This document shows, piece after piece, positions 6,108 through 39,400 of a stretch of DNA of 64,000 nucleotides; the first letter of the stretch is position 1; every line of letters begins with the position of its first letter. The notes under the pieces are model-generated. The model searched no databases. It was not told the DNA's origin and saw only the letters and a program-made list of their open reading frames with translations. A program made the position numbers and the translations under genes. Source of the DNA: Macrostomum hystrix (taxonomy: Eukaryota; Animalia; Platyhelminthes); contig CATNEN010000007.1 of the NCBI GenBank assembly GCA_950097015.1, positions 1,116,001 through 1,180,000 on the forward strand. Reading direction: 5' to 3'.

Positions 6108-6568
6108 TTTTATCTATTGTGTGTGGAGCGCCAAAGTTCTATGGTGTGTGGAGCAATAAGTTCTATGGTGTGTGGAGCAATAAGTTCTATGGTGTGTGGA
6201 GCAATAAGTTCTATAGTGTGTGGAGCGCCAGAGTTCTATGGTGTGTGGAGCGCCAAAGTTCTATGGTGTGTGGAGCAATAAGTTCTATAGTGTGTGGAGC
6301 GCCAGAGTTCTATGGTGTGTGGAGCGCTAAAGTTCTATGGTGTGTGGAGCGCTAAACTTGGTGTGTGGAGCGCTAAAGTTCTATGGTGTGTGGAGCGCTA
6401 AACTTGGTGTGTGGAGCGCTAAAGTTCTATGGTGTGTGGAGCGCTAAAGTTCTATGGTGTGTGGAGCGCTAAAGTTGGTGTGTGGAGCGCTAAAGTTCTA
6501 TGGTGTGTGGAGCGCTAAAGTTCTATGGTGTGTGGAGCGCTAAAGTTCTATGGTGTGTGGAGCGCCAA
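6108..6568. repeat. 24/25-bp minisatellite (GTTCTATGGTGTGTGGAGCGCTAAA)n
   Basis: Tandem copies seen directly. Confidence 0.93.
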
Positions 6569-7328
6569 AAGATTACACCCCGGGGCGCCAAAGAGCTTGA
6601 AAGATTTTTGTCAACTGCAAGGTCCCCAAATGTCCCCCAAGTGCAATTTCAGCTTTTCCACCTGAGCGAATATCTAAATTCGTTTCTTCTTGTCGCTCAG
6701 CCTCCGTGCCTTAGTTTTTATGCAGCGCTTTTTCATAGCAACCTGTCTGCTCTGCTAGAGCGCTCTTGAAAGTCTCAGCTCATTTAGTAAGCATACAGCC
6801 TCAGGCCCTGTTTGATGGTACACTGTTTCTCACCCCTCCGCCCCACTTCGACTCTAAAGCCTTTTCTCGTCACGTTTTCTCTATACATTGCTTCTAGCTG
6901 CAATTTTTTTCTCGGAACAATTTGGCTCGCTATGAATGTGTCTTCAAGGTGGACTCTCAGCAAAGTGCTCTGGACAAGCTGCCACTGCCAAACAGACTGG
7001 ACAGAAGCCTGCTTTCGGCGGAGCGGACAATGAAGGCCTGGGGATGAGGCCAGTGCTGGAGGAGGGTGGGTTGCTCACCTAAGACTATAAAGTGAGACGC
7101 CAGTGTCGTCTTTCGAGTTTCTCTTTCACGGCACCCAAAGCAACTGCAGTTATTTTTCTAGACGAATTTTCAAAAGCACAAAGCGACTTGATACCGACTT
7201 TGAATTTACTTCGAGTGCCGATTTCAAACGCGTCCAACAGCACCTCTTGGGTAAGTGGGTTTGTTTAAACTCTGTATTCTATAGTAAATTTTAGTTTAAA
7301 AACACATTACTGATTGAAAGGTCTAAAG

Positions 7329-7969
7329 CAGGGGTCGGCAAACTCCGGCCCGCGGGCCAGATGCGGCCCTCGAAGCTCCCAAATCCGGCCCGTTGCCCCT
7401 TCTGACATCTACAGTGTCCTGTTTCATCTCTCTCGTGTCTCATCTCTCCCGTGTCTAATCTCTCCCGTGTCTCATCGCTCTCGTGTCTCATCTCTCCCGT
7501 GTCTCATCTCTCCCGTGTCTCATCTCTCCCGTGTCTCATCTCTCCCGTGTCTCATCTCTCCCGTTTCTAATCTCTCCCGTGTCTCATCTCTCTCGTGTAT
7601 AATCTTTCTGTGTCTCATCTCTCCCGTGTCTAATCTCTCCCGTGTCTCATCTCTCCCGTGTCTAATCTCTCCCGTGTCTCATCGCTCTCGTGTCTCATCT
7701 CTCCCGTGTCTCATCTCTCCTGTGTCTCATCTCTCCCGTGTCTCATCTCTCCCGTGTCTCATCTCTCCTGTGTCTCATCTCTCCCGTGTCTAATCTCTCC
7801 CGTGTCTCATCTCTCTCGTGTATAATCTTTCTGTGTCTCATCTCTCCCGTGTCTAATCTCTCCCGTGTCTCATCTCTCCCCTATCTCATATTTATACAGT
7901 CAATGCGGCCCGCTGTCGTCTTTTAGGTTCTCTCTTTGGCCCGCCAGCAAATAAGTTTGCCTACCCCTG
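7329..7969. mobile_element. Non-autonomous hAT (Charlie-like) MITE carrying an internal 16-bp minisatellite
   Basis: TIRs CAGGGGTCGGCAAACT (7329) and AGTTTGCCTACCCCTG (ends 7969). The 8-bp flanks GTCTAAAG (7321-7328) and GTCTAAAC (7970-7977) resemble the NTCTARAN hAT target. Internal (TCTCATCTCTCCCGTG)n at ~7424-7890. Confidence 0.88.
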
Positions 7970-8249: not shown

Positions 8250-11200
8250 ATGGCGGCAACTTCCCACGACCAGCAGGAGATTGAACAGTGGCTTCTGGAT
8301 AACAAGGAGGCTGTTGAGTCTGCCGACTTGGGATGCACTCAACAGGCCCTGTTGGTGCAGCAGGCCAAGCAGGCTGTTCTGCTAGACGAGATCCGGGCTC
8401 TGGAAGGCAAGCTGGACGACTCGAACTCAAACAAGTCGATCGCGACCTCCTTGGCCAAGCTGAAGGCTGTGGAGGGCCAGATATGCGTCAACCAGGAGGC
8501 GCTCACTTACCTGGAGCAGGTGACATCCTTGGAGACGGTTCTGCTGTCCGTCGGGCAACAGGTGATGGAAAAGGCACTGGCCATGTCCCAGGTGACAGAC
8601 GGTGTGGTCCTCGAGGCCAAGAAGGTGAGTGAAAAAACCGACTTGGCTACTATTAGTAGGGTGTTGCACATTAATAATTTTTTTTTCCTTTTTTAAATAG
8701 TTTTTTTAAAGTACTTTTCTCTGTATACAGTAGACTTATTTTTAATTCGCTTGATCATTGTCGAGTGGGGTGGCTGCAGGTATGGGTAGTGGGGTTGCTG
8801 CAGGTATGGGTAGTGGGGTGGCAACGGTTATGTGCAGTGGGGTGGCTGCAGGTATGGGTAGTGGGGTGGCTACGGTAATGTGCAGTGGGGTGGCTGCAGG
8901 TATGGGTAGTGGGGTGGCTACGGTTATGTGCAGTGGGGTGGCTGCAGGTATGGGTAGTGGGGTGGCTGCAGGTATGGGTAGTGGGGTGGCTTCAGGTATA
9001 GGTAGTGGGTTGGCTATGGTTATGTGCAGTGGGGTGGCTGCAGGTATGGGTAGTGGGGTGGCTTCAGGTATGGGTAGTGGGGTGGCTGCAGGTATGGGTA
9101 GTGGGGTGGCTGCAGGTATGGGTAGTGGGGTGGCTTCAGGTATGGGTAGTGGGGTGGCTTCAGGTATGGGTAGTGGGGTGGCTTCAGGTGTGGGTAGTGG
9201 GGTGGCTGCAGGTATGGGTAGTGGGGTGGCTTCAGGTGTGGGTAGTGGGGTGGCTGCAGGTATGGGTAGTGGGGTGGCTGCAGGTATGTGCAGTGGGGTG
9301 GCTGCAGGTATGGGTAGTGGGGTGGCTGCAAGTATGGGTAGTGGGGTGGCTGCAGGTATTGGTAGTGGGGTGGCTGCAGGTATGGGTAGTGGGGTGGCTG
9401 CAGGTATGGGTAGTGGGGTGGCTGCAGGTATGGGTAGTGTGGTGGCTGCAGGTATGTGGAGTGGGGTGGGCGTGTGGATTATTCTAGCCAATCCCGTGCT
9501 ACTACCTTCCTCCCAGGAGCTGTCTGCGGAGATCCTCGGGAGCTGGAGCTGGGTGAGCCAGCTGGCTGATCTGAACCGCCTGCACACCAGAAACGCGGCC
9601 GACTACCAGGCCTTCCACCACGGCGCCTACGAGCTGAACGCCATGCTGAACAGCCGCGCCAGCAGCAGCTGCGCGAGCATCGCCGCCATCCCGGCCAACG
9701 GAATGCTGGGCTCCGTCAAGCGCATGAGCACTGTCCTCACCGTGAGTAGGGGCGATTGAGCTGGGCATTCGCTCTATCCACTTCCAGTTTTACATAAAAT
9801 CCCCAACTCACTTCTCCAGGACAACTTCGCCCAGTTCAACCGCCTGTGGCAGCTGTCTGTGGACCTATCACAGCGCAGCAAGGCTGTAGTGCCGCTGCAC
9901 CTGCGCTTCAGCACGGACGCCTTGCCCTTCATCGGCAAGAATGTCTTCAAGTTCGATGACGGGGAGGTGAGAGCTCGACTTGCTATTTTCAGTGGCTTCA
10001 AATGAGTTTGTTTTCGAAACCTGAAAACCTGAAGCAACACCCACCCCATCCTTGAGGCCACAGCCACCCCATCCTTAAGGCCACAGCCACCCCATCCTTG
10101 AGGCACCAGCCACCCCATCCTCGAGACCACAGCCACCCCATTCTTAAGGCCACAGCCACCCCATCCTTGAGGCCACAGCCACCCCATACTTGAGGCCACA
10201 GCCACCCCATCCTTGAGGCACCAGCCACCCCATCCTCGAGACCACAGCCACCCCATTCTTAAGGTCACAGGCACCCCATCCTTGAGGCCACAGCCACCCC
10301 ATCCTTGAGGCACCAGCCACCCCATCCTCGAGACCACAGCCACCCCATTCTTAAGGTCACAGGCACCCCATCCTTGAGGCCACAGCCACCCCATCCTTGA
10401 GGCACCAGCCACCCCATCCTCGAGACCACAGCCACCCCATTCTTAAGGCCACAGCCACCCCATACTTGAGGCCACAGCCACCCCATCCTTGAGGCACCAG
10501 CCACCACATCCTCGAGACCACAGCCACCCCATTCTTAAGGTCACAGGCACCCCATCCTTGAGGCCACAGCCACCCCATCCTTGAGGCAACACCCACCCCA
10601 TCCTTGAGGCCACAGCCATCCATCCTTGAGGCGGTGACTTTTCAACCCCTAATTAGCCTCCGCCATCCACCGCTTCGTTCTGTCGCGCAGACAGTCCTGG
10701 AGGCCGGTGAGCAGGTGACGGTAATCGACAATTCCCAGTCGTACACCTGGACGGTGAAAAGATCCGATGGCAGCGAGCTGGAGGTGCCCAGCACCTGCAT
10801 CTGGCTGCCGCCCACGGACCCGCAAGCGCTGGAGCTGGCCATCGGGTTCGTCAAATTTTTTCTTTGTTGAATACAAAAATTGCGGATTAAGAAAGGTCAT
10901 GTCAATCGAGCACTTTAAAAATTATAGTTAAACAGTCAGTTGACTCCTTGACAACTCGGCCACGTTTTGGTAAACCACCTATTCCCAAAATTCCAGGCTG
11001 AGACGAAAGCTGCTGAACACCTGGTCGCAGGTTCTTAGCAAAATGCGGCAGTGGTGCGCTGAGTTCTACGACTCTTACCTGAGTCACATGCTCAAGAGTC
11101 CAGTGGTGAGTGTCGGGTGTCATTCGCTCGAAATAAACTCCTTAGCCAATACTAGTCTAACACGCATCACAGACCGTCAGCAAGAAGATCAAGGACCCTG

Positions 11201-14200
11201 TGAAGGCCTTCATGGAGGATTTGCGCAGGTCCAGCCGCACTTTCTTGGCTGTGAGCGACGAGCTGGCTGACCGACTGGGCAAGTCCATCGACAAGGTGCT
11301 GGAGAAGATTAGCGTTGCCGGTGAGTTCCACGGCTTTAGTTCAAGTGCAAAACTGAGAGTTCAGGACTTAGTGCATGGGACGGAAATATGGGATGGGATT
11401 GGGACGGAAGGATGGGATCGGATTGGGACTGAAGGATAGGATGGGATTGGGACTGAAGGATGGGATGGGATTGGGACTGAAGGATGGGATGGGATTGGGA
11501 CTGAAGAATGGGATGGGATTGGGACTGAAGGGTGAGATGGGATTGGGACTGAAGAATAGGATGGGATTGGGACTGAAGGATGGGATGGGATTGGGACTGA
11601 AGGATGGGATGGGATTGGGACTGAAGAATGGGATGGGATTGGGACTGAAGGGTGAGATGGGATTGGGACTGAAGAATGGGATGGGATTGGGACTGAAGGA
11701 TGGGATCGGATTGGGACTGAAGGATAGGATGGGATTGGGACTGAAGGATGGGATGGGATTGGGACTGAAGGATGGGATGGGATTGGGACTGAAGAATGGG
11801 ATGGGACTGGGACTGAAGGGTGAGATGGGAATGGGACTGAAGAATGGGATGGGATTGGGACTGAAGGATGGGATCGGATTGGGACTGAAGGATGGGATCG
11901 GATTGGGACTGAAGGATGGGATGGGATTGGGACTGAAGGATGGGATGGGATTGGGACTGAAGGATGGGATGGGATTGGGACTGAAGGATGGGATGGGATT
12001 GGGTCTGAAGGATGGGATGGGATTGGGTCTGAAGGATGGGATCGGATTGGGACTGAAGGATGGGATCGGATTGGGACTGAAGGATGGTATGGGATTGGGA
12101 CTGAAGGATGAGATGGGATTGGGACTGAAGGATGGTATGGGATTGGGACTGAAGAATGGGATCGGATTGGGACTGAAAGGTGAAATGTGATTGGGACTGG
12201 GGATGGGATGGGATTAGGACTGGGGATGAGTTGGGATTGGGAATGGAAGATGGGATGGGATCGGGAATTGAAGATAAGATGGGATCGGGAATGGAACATG
12301 AGATGGGATTGGGACTGTAGGATGGGATGGGATTGGGACTGTAGGATGGGATGGGATTGGGACTGAAGGATGGGATCGGATTGGGACTGAAGGATGGTAT
12401 CGGATTGGGACTGAAGGATGGTATGGGATTGGGACTGAAGGATGGTATGGGATTGGGACTGAAGGATGGGATCGGATTGGGACTGAAGGATGGTATCGGA
12501 TTGGGACTGAAGGATGGTATGGGATTGGGACTGAAGGATGAGATGAGATTGGGACTGAAGGATGGGATCGGATTGGGACTGAAGGATGGTATGGGATTGG
12601 GACTGAAGGATGGTATGGGATTGGGACTGAAGAATGGGATCGGATTGGGACTGGAAGCTGAAATGAGATTGGGACTGGGGATGGGATGGGATTAGGACTG
12701 GGGATGAGTTGGGATTGGGACTGGAAGATGGGATGGGATCGGGAATTGAAGATAAGATGAGATCGGGAATGGAGCATGAGATGGGATTGGGACTGTAGGA
12801 TGGGATGGCATTGGGAATGAAGGATGGTATAAGAATGAGACTGAAGGATGGTATAAGAATGAGACTGAAGGATGGTATAAGAATGAGACTGAAGGATGGT
12901 ATTAGAATGAGACTGAAGGATGGTATAAGAATGAGACTGAAGGATGGTATAAGAATGAGACTGAAGGATGGTATAAGAATGAGACTGAAGGATGGTATAA
13001 GAATGAGACTGAAGGATGGTATAAGAATGAGACTGAAGGATGGTATAAGAATGAGACTGAAGGATGGTATAAGAATGGGACTGAAGGGTGGGATATGAGC
13101 GGTGATTGAAGGATAGGGTATTAACGGGACTGAAGGAGGGAATATGAATGGGATTGGAATGAATTGGATATAATTGGAATTCAAGGATCGGAAAAAATGG
13201 AACTGAAAGAAATGATTGGACTCCCAGATGAGATTAGAGGTGATTGGAGGTTAATCCTAATTGTTTCGCCAAAATATCTGTCTGCTTTGTGATGCTTACA
13301 GAAGGCCCTCTAGGCTCACTGGTCGAGAGCGAGCTGGTCATCCTGAACAGCTGCCTGTCTAAGCTCGAGGAGCAGCTGAGCGAGTGGCAGCTGTGCTCCA
13401 GCGAGGCCGCTGACGCCGAGTCACAGCTGAAAGGTCGTACGGAGCTGTCGAATGAGTCAGCGGAAATGCTGGCACGCATTGAATTGTTGTCGTAAGCCTC
13501 ATTGCAGTGATATTTTGTGTATTGTGTATCATATTGAAGTTGACCAGTTTACTTATTGAAGCGCGATTTTATCGAACTTCAGACAGCTGCAGGAGGAGTC
13601 CATGGACCAGTTCGAGGAGCTGCAACGGAGTATCAAGAACTGGAAGCTGCAGGATGTCAAAGCCAAGTTCGAAGTCAACAGGGTGAGACGCCAAATATAT
13701 TATTGCGACAAATTAAATTAGGAGAGAAGTACAGTATCGGCTAAATAGCTCTAATGTAATAGCAATGTCTCAGCCTTACGTCATATGGAATTTGCAGCAC
13801 TCGCGCCAGTCCATGTTCCACGACCGCTCGTCGCTCACCGTGATGGACAGTGTCACTGGAGTCTCGGTCGTGTCAGCACAGACATATGCAGCTCCAGGCG
13901 TTGTCCAGAAGTCCAGCTTCCAAGTCCTGGAACCGAAGCATCAAACTTCGGTCAGCGAGACCGTCAAGTACAGTGTCACCGGCTCCAGCGAGAGGACCAG
14001 AGAAGAACTGCTGAAAACTTCCACCAAGGTAGCAACGAAGGTGATTTCAAGCGGCTGTAACGCATCAACAAACGAAGCCGACGTCACGATCAAAGAGGTC
14101 CACAAGCCAAAGAAGGAGCAAGTTACTTCAAGCGTCTCCACGCAAGATTTCCATACGCTGGTGCTGACTTACGTGGAAGAGCATCAACCGGACTTCTCCG

Positions 14201-17200
14201 CTGTATTTAACTCATGGACCGAAAAGACATCGGTTCAGAAGAGCGGCTCGCTTGCAAGAATTTCTATGACCTCGTCTGAAGAGACTGCAAAATCGAAAGT
14301 AGAGCGCAGAGAGTCCAGCATCAGCACTGGGGATTTTGGAGCGCAGGTGCGCCGCTATGTAGAAGAGCACAAGGCGGAGTTCTCAGCAATCTTTGCCTCA
14401 TGGAGCGGTTTCGACGCCCAAGTTCGTCGCTATGTTGAAGAGCATAAGTTGGAATTCTTCGCTCTTTTTGTCACGTTGAACGAATTTAAAGCTGAAGTTC
14501 ACCGCTATGTGCAGGAACACAAGGAAGAGTTCACCGCCCTCCTCGGCGTCAAGACAACGAAGGCAGTAGAGCTTCCAAAGCCGGCAGTTCGAGTATCTCA
14601 GACTGAGTGCTGGAAAGAGACCAGCATGAATGAATCTCACGCTCGATTTGAACAAGCTGTAGTGAAAGCAGCTACTACAGTCACAGAGGCGCACAGAGAA
14701 GTGATCGAAAAGAAAGTTGAAGTGATGGCATCCGGTTGTATGAGAGAAATATCCGTTGCGAATGCAAGCGTGCAGCAAACAAATCAGGCTCAAGTAATCT
14801 TCTCTCATGGCTCATACAAAGAGAAAGCTGCAGTTTCAGCATCTGTTGTGGCCCATGAGAGCGCTATTGTAAAAGCGAGTGGCTGCTTTAAAGATATAAT
14901 CATGGTAGAAAGCGAAGCCCAGATCAGGAGAGGAGAAACAACTGGTCGCCTATACGACATGCTACAAAGAAGTTTTCACCAACTCTGGCTCAGCCAGTGT
15001 AAGACCGGAAGTTGTTGTCTCAACTAGTGGGTGCTTCAGTGAGCTACGCTTTTCAGAGGGGTCCATCAAATGTTCTCCGGATTTCAAGTTATCTAATACC
15101 AGTTGCTACAAGGAACTGCATCTTGACACTGCTCAGGTGCACATGAAACAGGAATCTATAGTAACAGCTACTGGATGCTACGCAGAATGGCAGCTATTCG
15201 AAAAAACAGCAGCATTCAAAGAAAAAACTGCATTTTCAACAACGTCATGCTACAAAGAAGCAAGTTATGGTGATGCCGCAATGAGAATTGAGGCCGCACG
15301 TGCTGTTGTCAGTGCAAGCGGTTGCTACTATGAAACATCATACAAAGAAAGCAAAGCGCGGTTTATATTAGCAGAAAAACCAGTAAAATCATCTGGGTGC
15401 TTCAAAGAGACATCGTACAACGAATCAAAAGCTAAATTTATCCTGGTTGAAAAACCTGTAAAGTCATCCGGATGCTACAAGGAGCTCCACTTCGACGTCG
15501 CCTCAGTGTCGCAGACAATAAAGATCGAAGTGAGAGAATCTGGTTGCTTCAAGGAGTCCTTCTACCAGGAAAGTGCAGCCAGATTCGTGCAGAACATTGT
15601 GGTAGCAGCGACGGGCTGCTTCAAGGAGTCGTTCTACCAAGAGAGTGCAGCCAGATTCGTGCAGAACATTGTGGTAGCAGCAACGGGCTGCTTCAAGGAA
15701 TCGTTCTACCAAGAGAGTGCAGCCAGATTCGTGCAGAACATTGTGGTAGCAGCGACGGGCTGCTTCAAGGAGTCGTTCTACCAAGAGAGTGCCGCCAGAT
15801 TCGTGCAGAACATTGTGGTAGCAGCGACGAGCTGCTTCAAGGAGTCGTTCTACCAAGAGAGTGCAGCCAGATTCGTGCAGAAGATCGACGTTGCTGCAAC
15901 GGGCTGCTTCAAGGAATCGTTCTACCAAGAGAGTGCCGCCAGATTCGTGCAGAAGATTGTTGTTGCTGCAACGGGCTGCTTCAAGGAGTCGTTCTACCAA
16001 GAGAGTGCAGCCAGATTCGTTCAGAAGATTGTTGTTGCTGCAACGGGCTGCTTCAAGGAGTCGTTCTACCAAGAGAGTGCAGCCAGATTCGTTCAGAAGA
16101 TTGTTGTTGCTGCAACGGGCTGCTTCAAGGAGTCGTTCTACCAAGAGAGTGCAGCCAGATTCGTTCAGAAGATTGTTGTTGCTGCAACGGGCTGCTTCAA
16201 GGAATCGTTCTACCAAGAGAGTGCAGCCAGATTCGTTCAGAAGATCGACGTTGCTGCTACTGGGTGCTTTAGAGAAATCAAGATTGACGTGGCCGCAACG
16301 GGCTGCTTCAAGGAGTCGTTCTACCAAGAGAGTGCAGCCAAATTCGTTCAGAAGATTGTTGTTGCTGCAACGGGCTGCTTCAAGGAGTCGTTGTACCAAG
16401 AGAGTGCCGCCAGATTCGTGCAGAAGATTGTGGTAGCAGCAACGGGCTGCTTCAAGGAGTCGTTCTACCAGGAGAGTGCAGCCAGATTCGTGCAGAACAT
16501 TGTGGTAGCAGCAACGGGCTGCTTCAAGGAGTCGTTCTACCAAGAGAGTGCAGCCAGATTCGTTCAGAAGATCGACGTTGCTGCTACGGGCTGCTTCAAG
16601 GAGTCGTTCTACCAAGAGAGTGCCGCCAGATTCGTGCAGAACATTGTGGTCGCTGCAACGGGCTGCTTCAAGGAGTCGTTCTACCAAGAGAGTGCAGCCA
16701 GATTCGTTCAGAAGATCGACGTTGCTGCTACGGGCTGCTTCAAGGAGTCGTTCTACCAAGAGAGTGCAGCCAGATTCGTGCAAAACATTGTGGTAGCAGC
16801 AACGGGCTGCTTCAAGGAATCGTTCTACCAAGAGAGTGCCGCCAGATTTGTTCAGAAGATTGTTGTTGCTGCAACGGGCTGCTTCAAGGAGTCGTTCTAC
16901 CAAGTGAGTGCAGCCAGATTCGTGCAGAACATTGTGGTAGCAGCAACGGGCTGCTTCAAGGAATCGTTCTATCAAGAGAGTGCAGCCAGATTCGTTCAGA
17001 AGATCGACGTTGCTGCTACTGGGTGCTTTAGAGAAATCAAGATTGACGTGGCCGCAACGGGCTGCTTCAAGGAATCGTTCTACCAAGAAAGTGCCGCCAG
17101 ATTCGTGCAGAAGATTGTTGTTGCTGCAACGGGCTGCTTTAAGGAGTCGTTCTACCAAGAGAGTGCCGCCAGATTCGTGCAGAACATTGTGGTCGCTGCA

Positions 17201-20200
17201 ACGGGCTGCTTCAAGGAGTCGTTCTACCAAGAGAGTGCAGCCAGATTCGTTCAGAAGATCGACGTTGCTGCTACGGGCTGCTTCAAGGAGTCGTTCTACC
17301 AAGAGAGTGCAGCCAGATTCGTGCAGAAGATCGACGTTGCTGCAACGGGCTGCTTCAAGGAATCGTTCTACCAAGAGAGTGCAGCCAGATTCGTTCAGAA
17401 GATCGACGTTGCTGCTACTGGGTGCTTTAGAGAAATCAAGATTGACGTGGCCGCAACGGGCTGCTTCAAGGAGTCGTTCTACCAAGAGAGTGCAGCCAAA
17501 TTCGTTCAGAAGATCGACGTTGCTGCTACGGGCTGCTTCAAGGAGTCGTTCTACCAAGAGAGTGCAGCCAGATTTGTTCAGAAGATTGTTGTTGCTGCAA
17601 CGGGCTGCTTCAAGGAGTCGTTCTACCAAGAGAGTGCAGCCAGATTCGTTCAGAAGATCGACGTTGCTGCTACGGGCTGCTTCAAGGAGTCGTTCTACCA
17701 AGAGAGTGCAGCCAGATTTGTTCAGAAGATTGTTGTTGCTGCAACGGGCTGCTTCAAGGAGTCGTTCTACCAAGAGAGTGCAGCCAGATTCGTTCAGAAG
17801 ATCGACGTTGCTGCTACGGGCTGCTTCAAGGAGTCGTTCTACCAAGAGAGTGCAGCCAGATTCGTGCAAAACATTGTGGTAGCTGCAACGGGCTGCTTCA
17901 AGGAGTCGTTCTACCAAGAGAGTGCAGCCAGATTCGTTCAGAAGATCGACGTTGCTGCTACTGGGTGCTTTAGAGAAATCAAGATTGACGTGGCCGCAAC
18001 GGGCTGCTTCAAGGAGTCGTTCTACCAAGAGAGTGCAGCCAAATTCGTTCAGAAGATCGACGTTGCTGCTACGGGCTGCTTCAAGGAGTCGTTCTACCAA
18101 GAGAGTGCCGCCAGATTCGTTCAGAAGATCGACGTTGCTGCTACGGGCTGCTTCAAGGAGTCGTTCTACCAAGAGAGTGCAGCCAGATTTGTTCAGAAGA
18201 TTGTTGTTGCTGCAACGGGCTGCTTCAAGGAGTCGTTCTACCAAGAGAGTGCAGCCAGATTCGTTCAGAAGATCGACGTTGCTGCTACGGGCTGCTTCAA
18301 GGAGTCGTTCTACCAAGAGAGTGCAGCCAGATTCGTTCAGAAGATCGACGTTGCTGCTACGGGCTGCTTCAAGGAGTCGTTCTACCAAGAGAGTGCAGCC
18401 AGATTTGTTCAGAAGATTGTTGTTGCTGCAACAGGCTGCTTCAAGGAGTCGTTCTACCAAGAGAGTGCAGCCAGATTCGTTCAGAAGATTGTTGTTGCTG
18501 CAACGGGCTGCTTCAAGGAATCGTTCTACCAAGAGAGTGCAGCCAGATTCGTTCAGAAGATCGATGTTGCTGCTACTGGGTGCTTTAGAGAAATCAAGAT
18601 TGACGAGGCCGCAACGGGCTGCTTCAAGGAGTCGTTCTACCAAGAGAGTGCAGCCAAATTCGTTCATAAGATTGTTGTTGCTACAACGGGCTGCTTCAAG
18701 GAGTCGTTCTACCAAGAGAGTGCAGCCAGATTCGTTCAGAAGATCGACGTTGCTGCTACGGGCTGCTTCAAGGAGTCGTTCTACCAAGAGAGTGCAGCCA
18801 GATTCGTTCAGAAGATCGACGTTGCTGCTACGGGCTGCTTCAAGGAGTCGTTCTACCAAGAGAGTGCAGCCAGATTCGTGCAAAACATTGTGGTAGCTGC
18901 AACGGGCTGCTTCAAGGAGTCGTTCTACCAAGAGAGTGCAGCCAGATTTGTTCAGAAGATTGTTGTTGCTGCAACAGGCTGCTTCAAGGAGTCGTTCTAC
19001 CAAGAGAGTGCAGCCAGATTCGTTCAGAAGATTGTTGTTGCTGCAACGGGCTGCTTCAAGGAATCGTTCTACCAAGAGAGTGCAGCCAGATTCGTTCAGA
19101 AGATCGATGTTGCTGCTACTGGGTGCTTTAGAGAAATCAAGATTGACGTGGCCGCAACGGGCTGCTTCAAGGAGTCGTTCTACCAAGAGAGTGCAGCCAG
19201 ATTCGTTCAGAAGATCGACGTTGCTGCTACGGGCTGCTTCAAGGAGTCGTTCTACCAAGAGAGTGCCGCCAGATTCGTTCAGAAGATTGTTGTTGATGCT
19301 ACGGGCTGCTTCAAGGAGTCGTTCTACCAAGAGAGTGCAGCCAGATTCGTGCAAAACATTGTGGTAGCAGCATCGGGCTGCTTCAAGGAGTCGTTCTACC
19401 AAGAGAGTGCAGCCAGATTCGTTCAGAAGATCGACGTTGCTGCTACGGGCTGCTTCAAGGAGTCCTTCTACCAGGAGAGTGCAGCCAGATTCGTGCAGAA
19501 CATTGTGGTAGCAGCAACGGGCTGCTTCAAGGAATCGTTCTACCAAGAGAGTGCAGCCAGATTCGTTCAGAAGATTGTGGTAGCTTCAACTGGTGTCTTT
19601 AAAGAGTTGTCTGTCGATGTTGCTTTTGTCACCAATAAGTCTATTGTTGTAGTTGCTGCAACTGGTTGCTTCAAGGAGTCCTTCTACAAAGAAAGTGCTG
19701 CAAAATTTGAACAGAGTATTCAAATTTCGACGACAGGATGCTTTCGAGAAATTTCTTTTGACGTGGCTTTTGTCACGAAAACAACTAGTGTTGGTGTGAG
19801 TGCGACTGGCTGCTTTAAGGAAGCTATCTTTTCCGCTTCATCTGTGAGCATCACTTCGGAAGCAACTGTATTTAGTGCCACTAGCTGCTTCCGTGAGAAC
19901 TCACCAATTACTGCGTTCGCGGCTACTGGATGCTTTAAAGAGATTCACTTGAACCCATCCTCTGTTAATTTCGAGCTCAAGCTTCCACTGACTGCATCCG
20001 GGTGCTACAATGAGAGCACCGTTGTTGAAGAAGTAAAGATCAATCTTCCACCACCAGCACCTGTCGTTGTTAGCAAACCGGTAGTTAACTCCGGATGTGA
20101 ATTTGTTGGCACAACGACTAATGTGTCGGGTCGCTCGGATGAAAGAAGAATCGAAGAGGAGCATAACAGCCGGGTGTAAGTTTTATCTGCTTTACACTAT

Positions 20201-21433
20201 TACTTTATTCTTCACGCTATTTTTCATGTGTATTTTACTTTTGATTTTACTAATTTTTTTAGATTTGCAGTTGGCGTAGGTCGATCAGTAATTAAGGCAA
20301 CAAAGACTTCCGAGACACAAACGGATCTGAACTACAAGTCGGCGCTCTGGAACATGTTTGTACTATTGAACGGTCGTGTTGACATCAACCTCTCCTTTAT
20401 AGTTTCGTATTTCGGTGTTGAAGCTTTCGCTCGCGAGTACATGCTACTTCGCGAATTTCGAAGCGTTGCCACGCAAGCTGGTGAAGGAGGGGAAGTTGAA
20501 TTCGCGACAGTGTCCAGGAGGACAGACAACTTTCAGATCCGTTCATTTGATTCCAAATCAAGCGGAAACGTGACCTCGGCTAATATACACGGCCTGGTTT
20601 CTCGAGTCTCTGGATCTGAAGTGATTAACATCGGTGGATCTGACGGTGAGATGATTGATTTGTCTGACTCTGCCGCCAGAGTAACATCTGTCCAGAGACA
20701 GTCATCTGGATCGTATGGTGTCATTAAAGTGGCTGGCAGTAGTGAATACTCGTCTATGAGCTCGCGAACGGAGTCGATTCCGGTTAGCGTTCATGGTTTG
20801 GTGTCTCGCGTCACCGGATCAAGCGGTGGAGTAATCAACATCGGTGGTACTGACGGCAAACTCATCGACCTGTCCGACTCGAACACCGGAGTCTCGTCCG
20901 TTCGCAGACAGATTTCTGGATCCTCAGGAGGTGTGATGAGAGCCGAGAGCGGTGACGTTGCTTCATTTGGTTCACGGGTGGAGTATCTTCCAGCTGGAGT
21001 TGGCGTTCATGGTTTGGTGTCTCGCGTCACCGGACCAAGCGGTGGAGTAATCAACATCGGTGGTACTGACGGCAAACTCATCGACCTGTCCGACTCGAAC
21101 ACCGGAGTCTCGTCCGTTCGCAGACAGATTTCTGGATCCTCAGGAGGTGTGATGAGAGCCGAGAGCGGTGAGGTTGCTTCATTTGGTTCACGGGTGGAGT
21201 ATCTTCCAGCTGGAGTTGGCGCCCATGGTTTGGTGTCTCGCGTCACCGGACCAAGCGGTGGAGTAATCAACATCGGTGGTACAGACGGCGAACTCATCGA
21301 CCTGTCCGACTCGGTGAGCTCCCGCTCAGGAGCACACCTGCTGTCTGGTGATGCTCCGACCACGGTTCACCGCAGTAGCGGCGTGACCCATTTCTCAGCC
21401 ACGGAGGGACGCACGTTCAACCTCTCTGACTAG
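8250..21433 (+). CDS. Giant (~3000 aa) plakin-domain/SH3 protein with a long tandem-repeat tail
   Basis: Exons 8250-8624, 9517-9741, 9820-9966, 10691-10845, 10997-11105, 11173-11320, 13302-13491, 13583-13682, 13798-20175 (frame break near 14905-15136) and 20263-21433. All junctions are GT-AG and phase-compatible. Plakin-like motifs: [28 protein letters not shown] (cf. plectin QTQWSWMLQL...ENAAYFQFF), [10 protein letters not shown], and the SH3 insert [46 protein letters not shown]. Confidence 0.82.
8762..9470. repeat. 24-bp minisatellite (GGGGTGGCTGCAGGTATGGGTAGT)n in plakin intron 1
   Basis: Lies between the donor at 8625 (GTGAGT) and the acceptor at 9516 (CCCAG). Confidence 0.95.
10040..10630. 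repeat. 23/24-bp minisatellite (GCCACCCCATCCTTGAGGCCACA)n in plakin intron 3
   Basis: Lies between the donor at 9967 and the acceptor at 10690. Confidence 0.95.
11385..13095. repeat. 24-bp G-rich minisatellite (GGGATTGGGACTGAAGGATGGGAT)n with a derived sub-array, plakin intron 6
   Basis: Lies between the donor at 11321 and the acceptor at 13301. From ~12820 the unit changes to GACTGAAGGATGGTATAAGAATGA. Confidence 0.95.
15530..19600 (+). repeat. Coding 72-bp/24-aa tandem repeat ([23 protein letters not shown][V/D]), ~53 units plus six 39-bp short units
   Basis: Period of 72 (15601 to 15673). Unit variation is mostly synonymous in the + frame of ORF 15137..20179 (GAG/GAA, GCA/GCC/GCT/GCG, GTG/GTT, TTC/TTT), and all unit lengths are multiples of 3. 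Confidence 0.93.
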
Positions 21434-24585: not shown

Positions 24586-25730
24586 CAGATGATGTGCTCA
24601 CCCACTCGTGGGATTACGGACTTGGCTTAATTAGTATCAGGGACATAATGTAAAAGTAAAATATATTTAACTCAATTATAACTTTTGTTAATAATGACGA
24701 ATTAAAGTGACTAATTAAAACAATAATCTATTCGTTTCTAAGAAATTAGGTAAATGCCTTATAACAATTAAAGAAATGAAATTAAATTAAATTAATTTTT
24801 GTTTTAATTAGTATTATCGTTTTTGTTATTATTACTATTAATTCCAGCTCTAATGCCCCTCCTTCCTACGGAACAACATTTTTAGTTTTCTCTCATATTC
24901 TAATATTTTGCATTTTCGTTTCATTGATATTTAATTATTTGTATTTTTAGTCCATTACAATAATTTGCAATTTATTTGCTAAACTCGTTTATATATTTTA
25001 TATATTAGTGAAAGTTACTTTATATTGTTGTTATTATTAGGCATAATGCTGCAATCCAGTGAAATTTTGGTGTTTTAAAGTACATAATTACATTCAAAAT
25101 AGTAAAAACAAAACAAATCGAATTAAACATTTTTTCTACAATTTTATTCGCTATTTTATTGAAGCACTACTCATAGTAGAATAATTGAATCTTGTTAGTG
25201 TAAAAAAGAATTGTTTAGCTAACTAAGAAAACTAGCTGAATATGCAACATTGGCAAGCTTGATTGAGAGCCAAATAAGTTGCTTTTTTATGGAAAACATT
25301 TCTGGCTTCTGTTGAAAGTTAGTAAAACCTTCAAAGATGGCAGCATGGTCTCCTGCCCAAACTGCAGCTACTACTAATACTATTAAGCTGAGCTAATAAT
25401 ATCTGAGCTAATTTGAGCACGCATTGATGCTCTGTGCACAGGTTGTAAGTGCATATCTATAGACTGAAACGATTGTAGCAGTATAACAACATTAAATTTC
25501 TAACCAAATAAGATTTCCGTTGTTTCAAAGTTTTTTATGTACACTAGTAAAAATTAAATTTTTTGAATTCGTTTTTTAAGTTCCATTATTTAATTGTCGC
25601 ACCAGTTCAAGTTGCGTGTCATCAGAAACTAATGGGACTTTGTTGAAAAAAAGTTAAACTGGCGCCAATTCAAATAACATAATCCTTGAATCAAACGCCC
25701 TGGACGGCAAACGTAAAAGATTTGCTCCTG

Positions 25731-28700
25731 TCAGGCCCTGTCCACACTTGAAGTCCCGGCTCGCTCGCTGGTCCTATTGAAATCGCCGGGTCCCGTGGCC
25801 AGGACGGACTCGTTGCCCGGCAACGAATTGCTGACGTCATCAATCTTGGACGGACCGTGCTGGATGAGCAGCGCGATCTGCGGGGGTTCGTCGGCGTAAA
25901 AATATAATACGATACGATACGTCAAATGTGATACGTCAAACTGACTTTGTTTGAAGCCAGTCGACCCGAAGCGAGCGTGGACGAAATGCTGTCAATTCGC
26001 TGATTTGCTGTCATGCAGGGAACAACCCCATGTGCCTTGGGCATTGGCCCAAGCCTTCACTCTGTGGCTGGCTGTGCCCCATAATAATAATGTTGTTATT
26101 ATTTGGATAAGGGCTGTAGGCAATCGCCATCATCTGGTGACACTAGACCCGCAGCCAGCGAGGAGGCAATTCTGCTCATTCCACTGACTCCTGAGCACAC
26201 ACACTCACACAGGTGTGTGCATCTGCCCTGACTTTCTCATCGTCAGGCAGTGTACACTCTCACTGTGCCTTGGAGGTCGGCTCTCAAGGTCCGGAATTGC
26301 ACGACAAGCCCCCAAGCCTTCTCTCCGCGGCTGCGCCTCAAATGAATGTGGCATCTCGGCGGCGCGGAATCGAGCTCACGGAACTTGGTGCGAGAGCCAA
26401 ACTCGTAAGACCTTGACCTTAAATTAATGTGGTCGTGCCACGGATTCGAACTCGGGTGCTCTTTACACTTTAACTGTTAATACTTAAACTTTTTATATCC
26501 TGTCAGTATACTCAAAGGTGACAACTAGTCTGCCAGAACCCACCTTGCTGCCAAACACAATTATCAGAGCGGTGGTGCAGCAGACGATGATGCAGCCGTT
26601 GATCAGCAGGAAGCGCAAGTTGACTTCGCTGCCGGGCAGCACGAAGGTCATGACCACCCCCAGTGCGCCCATCACCATGGTATTGTAGACGCAGATTCCG
26701 ATCTTCTTCGAGTCGTTCAGGCTCTCGATGTGCACAGCTCGGGTCTCCCAGGCGAAGAAGATGCCGAAGGCCAACAGAAATCCTGAAAGCGATGTGTTGA
26801 TATAACACTGCTTGAAAAAATAAACTGAGAGTGCTATTTGAGGTTGGAAGTTCGTGAGTGGCCAGTTCATGAAGAGATTCACAGTGTGCTGTGTGGTCGT
26901 GAGTGGCCAGTTCATGAAGAGATTCACAGTGTGCTGTGTGGTCGTGAGTGGCCAGTTCATGAAGAGATTGACAGTGTTCTGTGTGGTCGTGAGTGGCCAG
27001 TTCATGAAGAGATTGACAGTGTGCTGTGTGGTCGTGAGTGGCCAGTTCATGAAGAGATTGACAGTGTGCTGTGTGGTCGTGAGTGGCCAGTTCATGAAGA
27101 GATTGACAGTGTGCTGTGTGGTCGTGAGTGGCCAGTTCATAAAGAGATTCACAGTGTGCTGTGTGGTCGTGAGTGGCCAGTTCATGAAGAGATTGACAGT
27201 GTTCTGTGTGGTCGTGAGTGGCCAGTTCATGAAGAGATTGACAGTGTGCTGTGTGGTCGTGAGTGGCCAGTTCATGAAGAGATTGACAGTGTGCTGTGTG
27301 GTCGTGAGTGGCCAGTTCATAAGGAGATTGACAGTGTGCTGTGTGGCCGTGAGTGGCCAGTTCATGAAGAGATTGACAGTGTGCTGTGTGGTCGTGAGTG
27401 GCCAGTTCATGAAGAGCTTCAGAATCGAACCATCATGACACCGAAACTCCGATAAATATTGAGAAATATTTAAAGTTTACGAAATAAAATACAACCTTTA
27501 TAGCCAATGAAGACGCTAGTCCACACAATGAGGTGTGTGCTGGTGCAGGACTGCACAACATTGGCTTCGATAGTGCCGCTGAGGATTGACTCCTGGAAGC
27601 AGACAAAGTGTTATATGTTTTTAGTTAGTAATTTTGATCAGTAAATTACGGACACAACAGCACCGTTTACCGGCCCTACCACAACGCCAAATTTGATGCT
27701 AGTCACAGACATTGGATCGATGGTGGCCCAGACGATGATTATGATGGTGTCCAGTGCCACCAGAGCCAGCACAATGCCTGCCAGGTGATGATCCTTGATG
27801 GCCTGGAAGATTAGGGGATTCGCAATAGTCAACTCTCGTGTCAAATCTCAGGTCCATCTCAGAGCACACCCCGGCCCTAATACTCACCACCCGCCGCAGG
27901 TTCCTGTTGGCGAAGATGACGTGCACCCGCCAGGTTTTGGCCAGCATGGCTCCGTAGGCGATGGAGTAGCCGAAGCAGAGGCTGGAGGACTGCAGCCAGC
28001 AGGCCACGGAGTCCTGAGTCCAGCTGCCGCCGATGGCGGAGAAGACGCAGGACATAAAGCAGAGAATGCAGCCGAGACCCATCAGGTTGTTGATGTTGGG
28101 CGAGGACATCTTGATTAGTTTGATGTGCCTGTAATGATGGTTGACACTGATGCAGCCCACCGTGAGGCCGATGCCGACGGAGCAGAGGCTCAGGATGATA
28201 ATGGCGCTGGTGCGGCTCACTACCTGCTGATTGGTTACCAGCTTTGGTTGATCCCTGGGCGGACTTCCACCTGAAAATTAAGCCATGTTTCGTATTTCAG
28301 ATTATAACAGCGCGAGATAAGCAAACCCAATCTTAGAGCACCTACCCCATCCTCCGGTTCTAAGGACACCAACAACCCCAACCTCCGCTTCGTAGAGCAC
28401 CAACCTCAACCTCCACTTCTTAGAACACCAACCCCATCCTCCGCTTCTAAGGACACCAACCCCAACCTCCGCTTCTAAGGACACCAACCCCAACCTCCGC
28501 TTCAAAGGACACCAAACCCAACCTCCGCTTCTTAGAACACAAACCTTAGGATACCAACCTCGTCCTCCGCTTCTAAGGACACCAACCCCAACCGCCGCTT
28601 CTAACAACACCAATCCCACACTCCTCCTGTAAAACGATAAAAGAAAAAATTTCACCCGCAAACTTCAGCTCCTCATTCCAGATGATGATATTTGAGTAGG

Positions 28701-33770: not shown

Positions 33771-34356
33771 GCAGAGATAATATGCTGAAATCATATATCA
33801 TAAGCAGAAAGTTCATTGCAAATCTATCGTATTAGGCAAGTAACAAGGCCATATTAAGTCAGTTTAATTTAAAAGACAAACTGAGGAAATTTATATTTTT
33901 CCTGTTTGCTTATTGCTATTTTTGCAACGGTCACATAAATCAGATTTCGTGTGCAATTATACAAGCATCAAAGCAAATCTATTAGTTTCATCACAATGCT
34001 TATTTGTTCGCGGTACAATACCATTCTTTCCAGCGTGGCACTGCCTTCCACTGTGGAAGGTAAGGCTATTTTTAGCTCATATGTGTAACACGCAGCAGAG
34101 AATTTGGGGTGTCTGTGCCCGATCTATTTTTAGCAACGCGCCTCTAGTCCACGCAGGCAAGGCTAGTTAAGTTGTGCATTGTACAATGCCAGGACTTACG
34201 CGTTGGAGGAAACTGGCCTGGCAACGACTGCCCATCGCCGCCAGATCCAACAGCATAAAAGCGACCGACCCAAGCGGGCAAGTTGAGAGTCAATCAACTC
34301 TGAGACACCTGGATAGAGCTTCTGAAGCAGCAAACCAATCAAGCGCATTCATAATC

Positions 34357-34914
34357 ATGGGCGTCTGGCTTTCAAGACTGCTGGAGAACTTCGTGGACGG
34401 CCAGCCGGCCAGGGTGCTGATGCTGGGCCTGGACGCGGCCGGCAAGACCACCATTCTGTACAAGGTGAAGCTGAATGAGACTGTCACCACAATTCCCACC
34501 ATCGGCTTCAACGTGGAGGAGGTGCGGCCCTGCAAGGGCGTCAGCTTCACCGTCTGGGACGTCGGCGGCCAGGAGCGAATCCGGGCTCTGTGGCGCCACT
34601 ACTACCAGAACTCCGAGGGCCTGCTATTCATCGTCGACTCGGCCGATCGGGAGCGCTTCGCCGAGGCCCGCCAGGAGATGATGGGCGTCCTCGAGGCGGA
34701 CGAGATGCGCCGCGTACCGGTGGTGGTCGTGGCCAACAAGCAGGACCTGCCGAACGCTGCAAGCGTTGCCGAGGTCGCCGACGCTCTGGCGATGCACAAG
34801 CTGACTGGCCGGCGTTGGCACATTCAGGGAGCCACCGCCACCACAGGCGACGGCATCTACGAGTCCATGCAGGAGCTCAGCCGCCTGGTGAAGGAGTTCC
34901 GGCGAACTCGCTGA
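34357..34914 (+). CDS. ADP-ribosylation factor (Arf/Arl) family small GTPase, 185 aa, intronless CDS
   Basis: MG start (Gly2 myristoylation site), GLDAAGKTT (G1), [10 protein letters not shown] (G2), WDVGGQ (G3), NKQD (G4), [10 protein letters not shown] (G5). Confidence 0.95.
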
Positions 34915-36414: not shown

Positions 36415-39400
36415 TCACAGGAACACATACTCGTCCGTGGACAGTGTAGTATAGCCGTCCCTGTTGAAACTGATCTGATGCAGCCGCAGCAGAGACTCCT
36501 CCAGTTCCGTGTAGGTCTCGTGCTCTCGCTGGCTGGCGTCGGTGCCAATGGAGAACAGCGGCAGGGCGGCAGACGCTGATGAGTAGGATGACGATGCGTC
36601 TAGATCGGCCCGATCCTGCGGACTGGCGGCGCAGACGTCAACGCGGCGAAGGAAGCAGTCAGCCTCGGGCCAGGAGCGCAGGAGGAAGCCGAGAGCACAG
36701 CTGGGGTCCAGCTCGGCCAGTCTCACCAGCCTAGGCTTGGCCCGATAGTGCAGGCTGGGCGGGGCGCCGGCCGGCTCGCACACGTGCGGATCCAGGCACA
36801 GCAGGCGATCGCCCTGGTAGCCGAAGATGTAGACGGAGTGGCGCGGCCGGCCTCCAAGCATGCCGACGAAGGCTTCGTCACCGAGCAGCACCTGGGGAGG
36901 GGATGTTTGAGAGGGAGTTTACATTGTGCTTATATTGAGTTTACTTGTGTTTACATTATGTTTTACATTATATACATTGTGTTTATATTGTGTTTAAACT
37001 GCTCTGATAAGCCTTATGTGTGTTTAAACTGCTCTGATAAGCCTTGTGTGTGTTTACACTGCTCTGATAAGCCTTGTGTGTGTTTACACTGCTCTGATAA
37101 GCCTTGTGTGTGTTTACACTGCTCTGATAAGCCTTGTGTGTGTTTACACTGCTCTGATAAGCCTTGTGTGTGTTTACACTGCTCTGATAAGCCTTGTGTG
37201 TGTTTACACTGCTCTGATAAGCCTTGTGTGTGTTTACACTGCTCTGATAAGCCTTGTGTGTGTTTAAACTGCTCTGATAAGCCTTATGTGTGTTTACACT
37301 GCTCTGATAAGCCTTATGTGTGTTTACACTGCTCTGATAAGCCTTATGTGTTTACACTGCTCTGATAAGCCTTGTGTGTGTTTAAACTGCTCTGATAAAG
37401 CTTGAGTGTGTTTACACTGCTCTGATAAGCCTTATGTGTGTTTAAACTGCTCTGATAAGCCTTGTGTGTGTTTACACTGCTCTGATAAGCCTTGTGTGTG
37501 TTTACACTGCTCTGATAAGCCTTGTGTGTGTTTACACTGCTCTGATAAGCCTTGTGTGTGTTTACACTGCTCTGATAAGCCTTGTGTGTGTTTACACTGC
37601 TCTGATAAGCCTTGTGTGTGTTTAAACTGCTCTGATAAAGCTTGAGTGTGTTTACACTGCTCTGATAAGCCTTATGTGTGTTTACACTGCTCTGATAAGC
37701 CTTATGTGTGTTTACACTGCTCTGATAAACCCCATGTGTGTTTACATTAGTCTTCAAATTATCTTACTCAATAGTTTAACAGAAGAATCACCTGCAAAGC
37801 GGCCAGGTACATGGGATTGGCCAGCCGAGCTCCCCCAAGCCACAGAGGCAGCAGCAGCAGCACGGCTCTGTTGTCACGAAAGGCATTGGGCTTGAGCATC
37901 TCAGCCAGCTGGTCCCGGTTGATGCAGGACTGCCTGGCAACTAGAACACTCAGGGTGGCCAGCATGGGCTCGTAAGCCGCTTCCTGGGCAAACATAGCAA
38001 CAAGTGCTCAAATCAATGTTGATTCCCACTGCTCAAATCAATGTTGATTCCCACTGCTCAAATCAATGTGGATTCCCACTGCTCAAATCAATGTGGATTC
38101 CCACTGCTCAAATCAATGTGGATTCCCACTGCTCAAATCAATGTGGATTCCCACTGCTCAAATCAATGTGGATTCCCACTGCTCTAATCAATGTTGATTC
38201 CCACTGCTCAAATCAATGTGGATTCCCACTGCTCAAATCTAGCTCAGTTACCAACTCAGGTCAATCTGGGCTCCATTAGCTGCTACTCACCTGCACAGCC
38301 AGCCGAATGGCTTCAGCAGCCGTGGCAGGCCCGATGAAACGGCCGGCCGGTGAGCCGCTCGCATGCTGCAGCAGCCGGCGCAGTGACAGCGGGCCGTTGG
38401 TCTCATGGAACAGATTCAACAGCTGGCCAATCAGCTGCTGGCCGTTGGTTCCTCCGCGGCCTGCCTGCAGCTGCTGGAACCTCCAGGCCCGGCCGAAGTG
38501 CAGCGACTGCAGCGCGTTGCCAAGCAGCATCTGGGCGCAGCGGTACATGCAGCCCCAGCCCGCATCCGTGGTGAACCGCCTCCGGCCTCCGCTCAAGTCT
38601 GAGCTGCTTTTTGAGTCGCTGTTAACAGGCTCGTTGAGCACAATTGGTTCGAAGTTTTTTCTGGAAAACAATAAGTGCATTTTATGTGCTTTGGGAACGT
38701 ATTAAAACGCTCCCAAACGAATACACTGGTATCAAGAACAATGCTCTCAAAGGACAATGGTCCCAAGGACACTGGTCTTAAGGACACTGGTCCCAAGGAC
38801 ACTGGTCTTAAGGACACTGGTCCCAAGGACACTGGTCCCAAGGACACTGGTCCCAAGGACACTGGTCCCAAGGACACTGGTCCCAAGGACACTGGTCCCA
38901 AGGACACTGGTCCCAAGGACACTGGTCTTAAGGACACTGGTATCAAGAACAATGCTCTCAAAGGACACTGGTCCCAAGGACACTGGTCCCAAGGACACTG
39001 GTCCCAAGGACACTGGTCCTAAGGACACTGGTCCCAAGGACACTGGTCCCAAGGACACTGGTCCCAAGGACACTGGTCCCAAGGACAATGGTCCCAAGGA
39101 CACTGGTCCTAAGGACACTGGTCCCAAGGACACTGGTCCCAAGGACACTGGTCCCAAGGACACTGGTCTTAAGGACACTGGTCCCAAGGACACTGGTCCC
39201 AAGGACACAGGCCTGCTGTAAATTGGTTATTACCTGTAGCAAGCGAAGAATCTGGAGGCCATATCGGCAGCCAGTTGCCTTGTCTGCTCAGACTGATTAG
39301 TGTCATAGTACGCCCCCATACAGCATACTGGCTGAGATTTTGACAACCTCAAACCAGTACTGAGGTTCACTGAATATCTGAAACTGTTCCACATATCGGA

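Follow-up and report, generated by a model that had tools for sequence, protein, structure and literature searches.

A short plakin head followed by a giant tail of orphan repeats in Macrostomum hystrix: a probable lineage-specific plakin-family linker and its paralogues

INTRODUCTION

Plakin domains are cytoplasmic modules, and a full-length plakin domain spans spectrin repeats 3 to 9 (SR3-SR9), about 900-1000 residues. The modules with which they are partnered are thought to form a small, fixed set, namely the CH domain, a coiled-coil or spectrin rod, plakin repeats, and GAR. Two groups of described proteins come closest to the gene reported here, which occupies positions 8250-21433 of a 64,000-nucleotide (nt) stretch of the genome of the flatworm Macrostomum hystrix (contig CATNEN010000007.1, positions 1,116,001 to 1,180,000, forward strand; hereafter the window). 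Envoplakin and periplakin resemble it in that their plakin domain, which contains an SH3, is N-terminal and a CH actin-binding domain is missing. However, their plakin domain is full-length and is followed by a coiled-coil rod and by a linker or plakin-repeat C terminus, whereas the gene in the window joins a half-length head to orphan repeats. The spectraplakins (Shot, VAB-10, and MACF1/BPAG1) share the layout of plakin-domain exons followed by a giant tandem-repeat exon, along with the logic of a cytoskeletal linker, and an isoform of Shot with a giant plakin-repeat exon has been described (PMC2173965). Unlike the spectraplakins, the gene in the window is without a CH domain, plakin repeats, a spectrin rod, EF hands, and GAR.

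An initial annotation, made from the letters of the window, proposed that the locus fuses a plakin head to a repeat tail in a possibly undescribed architecture. Our literature search for plakins of Macrostomum or other flatworms found none. To that extent the proposal stands, but GenBank and UniProt already contain orthologues, labeled as hypothetical or "SH3_10 domain-containing" proteins, and paralogues exist. Our analysis points, with moderately good odds, to one gene, an orthologue of PAA76993.1 and PAA82667.1 from Macrostomum lignano, that encodes a cytoplasmic, lineage-specific linker of the plakin family, some 3,000 residues long, with cysteine-bearing repeats that may be rod-like.

RESULTS

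Gene anatomy

Exons were placed by tblastn of M. lignano PAA82667.1 against the window, and their borders were read directly from the window sequence (Table 1). From 8250 to 21433, all nine introns are GT-AG and phase-compatible. The head consists of eight small plus-strand exons (8250-13682) with GT-AG borders throughout, and their 1449 nt amount to the 483 codons that the initial annotation had counted; the start methionine is shared with the M. lignano models. The tail, with about 2,500 residues of repeats, is divided between two further exons. Their extents agree with the 6.4 kb and 1.2 kb first assigned to them (6378 nt at 13798-20175, and 20263-21433), but the 6.4-kb exon is not a single reading frame, a point to which we return below.

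The plakin head

Several lines of evidence identify the head as plakin. The plakin SH3 (SH3_10, PF17902) was found in exon 4 with an E value of 3e-10 and 40.5 bits, against a Pfam cut-off of 22.8. This match covers only profile positions 26-65 because the first third of the SH3 sits in exon 3. The M. lignano proteins match the profile in full (positions 1-65), and in PAA76993.1 the match spans the equivalents of exons 3 and 4. In addition, residues 126-315 of PAA76993.1 align with the solved plakin domains of plectin (3pe0, E = 2.9e-8) and desmoplakin (3r6n, E = 5.9e-8). These alignments, which were made on the orthologue and concern a region where the window exons are 71-87% identical to it, include the helices flanking the SH3, and the residues orthologous to exon 2 align to both structures. 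Across the entire head, the window exons are colinear with the M. lignano orthologue at 51-87% identity, with exon 1 at 72% (tblastn, PAA82667.1 residues 5-124). Finally, the AlphaFold2 (AF2) model of the orthologue, with a mean predicted local distance difference test score (pLDDT) of 43, contains about 11 long helices up to residue 478 and strands where the SH3 sits.

The recognizable plakin domain with an SH3 insert claimed at the outset is thus present. The initial annotation had also expected profile searches of the first 483 residues to return both SH3 and spectrin repeats. The SH3 was recovered at the E value given above; for spectrin repeats, the exon-by-exon Pfam search returned only a weak match, in exon 1 (E = 0.005). 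At 483 codons the head falls short of a full-length plakin domain. Outside flatworms, a word search with the head alone matched only mammalian envoplakins, and these matches were weak (E = 2e-6; some 30% of the head aligned, at 28-34% identity). As judged from sequence, the head is a genuine but short plakin domain, with about three and a half predicted spectrin-like repeats and the SH3 in the second.

The modules that accompany other plakins were sought in the gene and in the genome (220,453,370 bases in 42 contigs, with the window at C7:1116001-1180000). There were 80 genome matches to the CH domain (PF00307), none of them within C7:1.116-1.180 Mb. The eight genome matches to GAR/GAS2 (PF02187) all lie on contigs other than that of the gene, and Pfam found none in the last exon. 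Likewise, the plakin repeat (PF00681) was absent from the pieces of the gene and from genome matches on its contig. These genome-wide and piecewise searches uphold the earlier statement that CH, plakin-repeat, and GAR domains are missing from the locus. As for a rod, the AF2 model of the orthologue, used here in place of a dedicated coiled-coil predictor, passes after the head into disorder (residues 480-598), then short helices (599-668), and then strands.

One coding unit in M. lignano

The case for a single gene is comparative, and M. lignano proteins served as the proxy for the joined protein in searches and folding. Three of them (PAA76993.1, 895 aa; PAA82667.1, 1091 aa; and P0007) run uninterrupted from the head into the tail, through three helical units, and into units with the cysteine motif. 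The GenBank proteins of M. lignano are open reading frames on RNA-seq-guided transcript assemblies (PMC5730564), and therefore the junction between head and tail is transcript-supported in that species. A further UniProt model (P0016) is continuous from the cysteine array into the last exon. The plakin head and the repeat tail thus form one coding unit in the closest public relative, as had been claimed for the gene in the window.

Could the two parts nonetheless occur on separate mature mRNAs? Macrostomum uses spliced-leader trans-splicing, and about 7% of M. lignano transcripts are multigene precursors (PMC5730564), such that a spliced leader might be added at the 13797 acceptor; alternatively, the tail might start within intron 8, where there is an in-frame ATG at 13765. 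Against this, the exon 8 donor and the exon 9 acceptor have the same phase and the frame is continuous, the transcript-derived proteins of M. lignano cross the junction directly, and conservation with M. lignano begins at the acceptor rather than at the intronic ATG. Furthermore, the layout of a head followed by a giant exon is kept in several paralogues. We consider separate mRNAs to be quite unlikely.

The M. lignano locus (NIVC01000773.1:105895-149017; PAA76993.1 and PAA82667.1 are UniProt A0A267FTC3 and A0A267GB43) has the same order of exons and modules, that is, head, helical units, cysteine array, conserved block, Gly/Ser repeats, and C-terminal motif. Identity in the tail is about 36-44%, with 44% overall for the last exon. 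The two species differ in that the M. lignano array has a 48-aa double unit over about 6.5 kb versus a 24-residue period in M. hystrix, and three helical units versus four. The older M. lignano assembly breaks the frame within the array, which is why the database models stop short, at 895 aa and 1091 aa. No expression entry for Mlig010347 or Mlig021572 was found in the searchable full text and supplements of PMC5816591 and PMC10468722.

In M. lignano there is also a tandem paralogue upstream that has only helical and Gly/Ser repeats. Its 2,089-aa exon (L018 13656-19925) holds about 40 helical units, about 16 Gly/Ser units, and no cysteine units. No counterpart was found in the M. hystrix genome: protein searches with the tail start and the last exon returned no second locus with helical or Gly/Ser units, and a DNA search for copies of the tail start returned only its own locus. 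Both GenBank models take exon 1 from this upstream paralogue (100% identity) and exons 2-9 from the downstream gene, which keeps an exon-1-like sequence of its own (85%; L018 10001-10372 versus 25182-25553, L019 10001-10372 versus 27676-28047). The first exon may be shared between the two genes; otherwise the annotation is partly chimeric.

The repeat tail is constrained but matches no known family

The helical and Gly/Ser repeats described at the outset, of 25 and 72 aa, were located as four units each, of about 25 and 70 aa, respectively. The count of about 53 copies for the cysteine repeat holds for the near-identical units, but the array as a whole, which starts at 14909, contains about 74 units with the cysteine motif. 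These are the 53 near-identical ones, six of 13 aa, and some 15 that are divergent, and 62 of the 74 are spaced 24 residues apart.

Most differences among the 53 core units leave the protein unaltered. Codon position 3 accounts for 185 of the 217 minor-base counts, and differences from the consensus are 170 synonymous to 47 nonsynonymous in the plus-strand frame, versus 3 to 214 and 5 to 212 in the other two frames of that strand; because the units share ancestry, such per-cell counts are nonindependent events, and we used alongside them a count of variable columns, of which 19 of 26 are third positions (binomial p = 4e-5). The earlier observation of mostly synonymous variation is thereby confirmed, and with it the argument that the repeat is translated and under selection.

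Searches for relatives of the tail gave little beyond Macrostomum. A word search with the 1,680-aa repeat frame had no match, structural look-alikes in the ESM Atlas for the cysteine array and the last exon yielded nothing usable, and Pfam over all tail pieces produced summed-repeat artefacts only. Among the latter was eRF1_2 on the cysteine array (14909-16036, E = 2.9e-8; 19301-20173, E = 8.5e-6), which we rejected as an artefact since no single stretch passes. When the first 420 tail residues were compared by HMMER with 1.84 billion cluster representatives, there were three true matches, all from M. lignano. The absence of a family match and the lineage-specific nature of the tail, both proposed earlier, agree with these results. 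The conserved block of about 68 aa in the last exon was likewise negative in Pfam and the ESM Atlas; AF2 models it as helix-hairpin-helix at a pLDDT of only about 50-58. For the last exon in its entirety, AF2 gave no fold (pLDDT 28).

In the AF2 model of the orthologue, the cysteine units appear as regular short strands with local pLDDT of 60-80. A Foldseek search of this model against the PDB returned nothing significant, only weak beta-helix rows. Over the cysteine units, the best structural rows were both beta-solenoids. The fibril of CsgA, the curli subunit and a bacterial amyloid located outside the cell, scored Z 9.9 at a root-mean-square deviation (rmsd) of 8.8, and a SufB/D-like beta-helix scored Z 9.1, with an rmsd of 3.4 across 163 residues. 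In the CsgA structure (PDB 8enq) each coil takes about 22-24 residues, similar to the 24-residue unit, and the orthologue's units are modeled as stacked strand-turn-strand coils, but the sequences show no relationship, the scores lie in the middle range, and confidence in the model is low, so that the likeness is one of shape only. The model weakly suggests that the cysteine units form a beta-solenoid-like rod.

The frame break in exon 9

The frame that enters exon 9 at 13798 is sensible to about 14908, after which the repeat pattern is lost and a stop is reached at 15025-15027. The +1 frame has a TAG at 14906-14908, is open only from 14909 onward, and carries proper cysteine-motif units to the end of the exon. 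The interval in which the switch must occur (14909-14950) falls within four units that the M. lignano orthologue lacks.

An intron does not readily account for the break. We evaluated 230 in-frame GT-AG pairs and found none convincing and none credible inside 14909-14950; the best-looking pair, 14999-15056, makes a stop codon at the junction. One weak in-frame pair, 14879-15167 (donor GTGGCT), would skip the four units that M. lignano lacks and leave a junction colinear with the orthologue.

If the break were real, the gene would be truncated or decaying, with a product made of the head and about 400 tail residues, and the array and the last exon would go untranslated. The stop in the entry frame, the late opening of the repeat frame, the want of a good intron to restore the frame inside the interval, and the position of the break in units missing from M. 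lignano are all in keeping with such a truncation. Yet about 1,750 codons are open downstream of the break, including 405 nonrepeated codons without a stop (chance 5e-10), the variation between units is strongly synonymous, and the block in the last exon is roughly 85% identical to M. lignano. The bypass at 14879-15167, despite its weak donor, would also be colinear with the orthologue. Moreover, the M. hystrix assembly was made from PacBio reads with canu and polished with Arrow and Pilon (PMC10468722), a method that leaves indels, and similar midarray frame switches occur in the arrays of two paralogues (L010 7455-7480 and L012 7482-7511). The shared switches suggest that this assembly generally retains indels where tandem repeats are long. 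We regard a residual long-read assembly indel as the likely cause of the break, and a truncated gene as unlikely.

Paralogues in the genome

There are 14 matches to SH3_10 in the genome, several of which share an intron position inside the SH3. Three loci on contig C38 (25.05, 23.11, and 23.13 Mb) have colinear head exons at 31-60% identity, and contig C34 has partial head matches. Giant open frames of unrelated tandem repeats follow the C38 and C34 loci and the SH3 locus on contig C39. As read from the genome, the pairing of a plakin head with a giant repeat tail is a family trait in M. hystrix and not a one-off.

The paralogue at C38:25.06 Mb is the one whose tail resembles that of the window gene. 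Its frame is built of the same 24-residue unit of the G-C-F-K-E type, arranged as a 72-residue triple with one unit having Val for Cys; across the array, one third of units have Val instead of Cys. A hidden Markov model (HMM) made from the window units recognized 73 units in a 10-kb stretch of this paralogue, and it also matched the M. lignano arrays. We rejected the idea that the G-C-F-K-E unit is common to all paralogue tails, as the HMM scored no higher than shuffled controls in four other tails. The heads at C38:23.1 Mb, C34, and C39 are followed by giant frames of about 1,600 to over 3,000 aa, to which the HMM is blind. Loci of the canonical spectraplakin type lie elsewhere in the genome (C39, about 9.35-9.42 Mb; C2, about 0.43-0.48 Mb).

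Introns and surroundings

Introns 1, 3, and 6 are packed with minisatellites of 23-24 nt (8764-9469, 10030-10632, and 11376-13094). More generally, minisatellites of 16-25 nt in 19 to 72 copies occupy the long introns and two upstream tracts (6113-6569 and 7420-7889). Because of them, long spurious open reading frames arise on both strands, for example 607 aa at 11361-13184 on the minus strand. The first ten codons of intron 8 (13683-13712), read in frame, resemble the first ten of exon 9 (13798-13827) and the M. lignano residues, with R-Q, an aromatic, and D-K/R in common; this may be chance or the trace of a duplicated exon border. The neighbors of the gene in the window are ordinary genes (Table 1).

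Table 1. Coordinates of the plakin-head gene, its repeat modules, its neighbors in the window, and its paralogues. Window positions are given unless a contig is named; P0005 is PAA82667.1.
Feature	Position	Strand	Length	Description
Exon 1	8250..8624	+		Starts at the start codon; first spectrin-like three-helix unit; donor GTGAGT at 8625
Exon 2	9517..9741	+		Helices of the SH3-bearing spectrin repeat; tblastn against P0005, GT-AG
Exon 3	9820..9966	+		Completes helix B and begins the plakin SH3 (first third); tblastn
Exon 4	10691..10845	+		C-terminal two thirds of the plakin SH3; 87% identity to P0005
Exon 5	10997..11105	+		Helix after the SH3; 73% identity to P0005 residues 301-337
Exon 6	11173..11320	+		Helical; 51% identity to P0005 residues 338-384
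Exon 7	13302..13491	+		Helical; 60% identity to P0005 residues 382-449
Exon 8	13583..13682	+		Final head exon, ending in phase 0; donor GTGAGA at 13683
Intron 8	13683..13797	+	115 nt	Phase 0 at each end; keeps head and tail in frame
Exon 9	13798..20175	+	6378 nt	Low-complexity start, then helical units, then cysteine-motif array; holds the frame break
Helical units	14146..14547	+	~25 aa each	Four amphipathic units of the D-F-x4[12 protein letters not shown] type; helical in the AF2 model of the orthologue
Frame-break interval	14909..14950	+		Site of the +1 switch
Core array	15542..19591	+	72 nt (24 aa) per unit	53 near-identical units, one Cys each; six truncated 13-aa units interspersed
Divergent units	19592..20175	+		Divergent cysteine-motif units and end of exon 9
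Intron 9	between 20175 and 20263		87 nt	Donor GTAAGT at 20176
Exon 10	20263..21433	+	~1.2 kb	Last exon, stop codon included
Conserved block	20306..20509	+	~68 aa	Most conserved part of the protein, roughly 85% identical to M. lignano
Gly/Ser-rich units	20588..21400	+	~70 aa each	Four units, then conserved C-terminal motif at 21404-21430
AATAAA	21732..21737	+		Candidate polyadenylation signal ~300 nt past the stop; consensus match only
Class C G-protein-coupled receptor exon	27699-28220	-		
Arf-family GTPase	34174-34914	+		
ATG4-type peptidase C54 exons	36415-38680	-		
Ribosomal protein uL6	41167-41790	-		
Cytochrome P450	45633-47159	-	508 aa	Intronless
Ankyrin-repeat protein	53679-57446	+	1,255 aa	Single exon
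Paralogue	C38:25,056,900-25,082,000			Plakin head colinear, 37-53% identity (L003 4969-8358); 6,657-aa frame (L011 from 586)
Paralogues, two in tandem	C38:23,110,000-23,144,000			Further plakin-SH3 heads (L004, L012, L005, L013)
Paralogue	C34:5,585,000-5,602,000			Further plakin-SH3 head (L002, L010, L017)
Paralogue	C39:10,037,000-10,045,800			Further plakin-SH3 head (L009)

DISCUSSION

How might such a protein work? As plakin domains do, the head would dock the protein at a membrane junction or a cytoskeletal anchorage. From there the tail would proceed through a disordered stretch, four helical units, about 74 beta-rich units of 24 residues with cysteine, the block of about 68 residues, and the Gly/Ser repeats, and these orphan modules would stand where known plakins have the coiled-coil rod, plakin repeats, and GAR. 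The cysteine array may be a long and regular beta-solenoid-like rod with one unit per coil. By the general geometry of beta-solenoids, on which the estimate of length depends, 74 units would extend for about 35 nm, with the cysteines in line. At the far end, the C-terminal block and the Gly/Ser repeats may bind a partner. More specific roles, such as a junction, adhesive-organ, or muscle-anchor protein, or an elastic or Cys-cross-linked filament, are guesses.

A giant repetitive protein with regularly spaced cysteines is also reminiscent of secreted adhesive or matrix proteins, and one could picture an extracellular structural protein, either a glue or a Cys-cross-linked fibre. We find this highly improbable. 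The N terminus is hydrophilic and conserved, without a signal-peptide-like or membrane-spanning stretch by eye, and plakin domains are cytoplasmic, which is why we read the protein as intracellular. In addition, a third of the units in the array of the C38:25.06 Mb paralogue do without the cysteine.

Several points weigh against a single intracellular linker of about 3,000 residues. The frame break is present in the available sequence; were it real, translation would end with the stop at 15025-15027 and yield about 890 residues. The head has only some half the length of a canonical plakin domain. The AF2 models are poor overall, with mean pLDDT of 43 for the orthologue and 28 for the last exon, and the structural scores are within the range reached by unrelated repeat proteins. 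For the joined protein, searches and folding rest on the M. lignano proxy. The argument for one transcript is comparative; the GenBank models of the orthologue are themselves not flawless, as they begin with exon 1 of the neighboring paralogue.

Our findings also raise a broader, more tentative possibility. In Macrostomum, the plakin head may have been reused as a docking module on different giant orphan repeats, with the Cys-ladder beta-solenoid being a new intracellular rod in the window gene and in the 6,657-residue paralogue. We would not yet bet on this idea but, if true, it would represent a previously unknown way to build cytoskeletal linkers or an intracellular skeleton.

What the genome presents is the union of a short plakin head with repeat tails that are very large and evolve fast, in an early-branching flatworm lineage that includes a laboratory model. 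These ideas are directly testable, since RNA interference, in situ hybridization, and transgenesis exist in M. lignano and the orthologues have been identified. Should the tails prove to be structural rods or to bind filaments, they would count as new cytoskeletal building blocks, and they might help explain how cells are reinforced in flatworms, which lack a cuticle.

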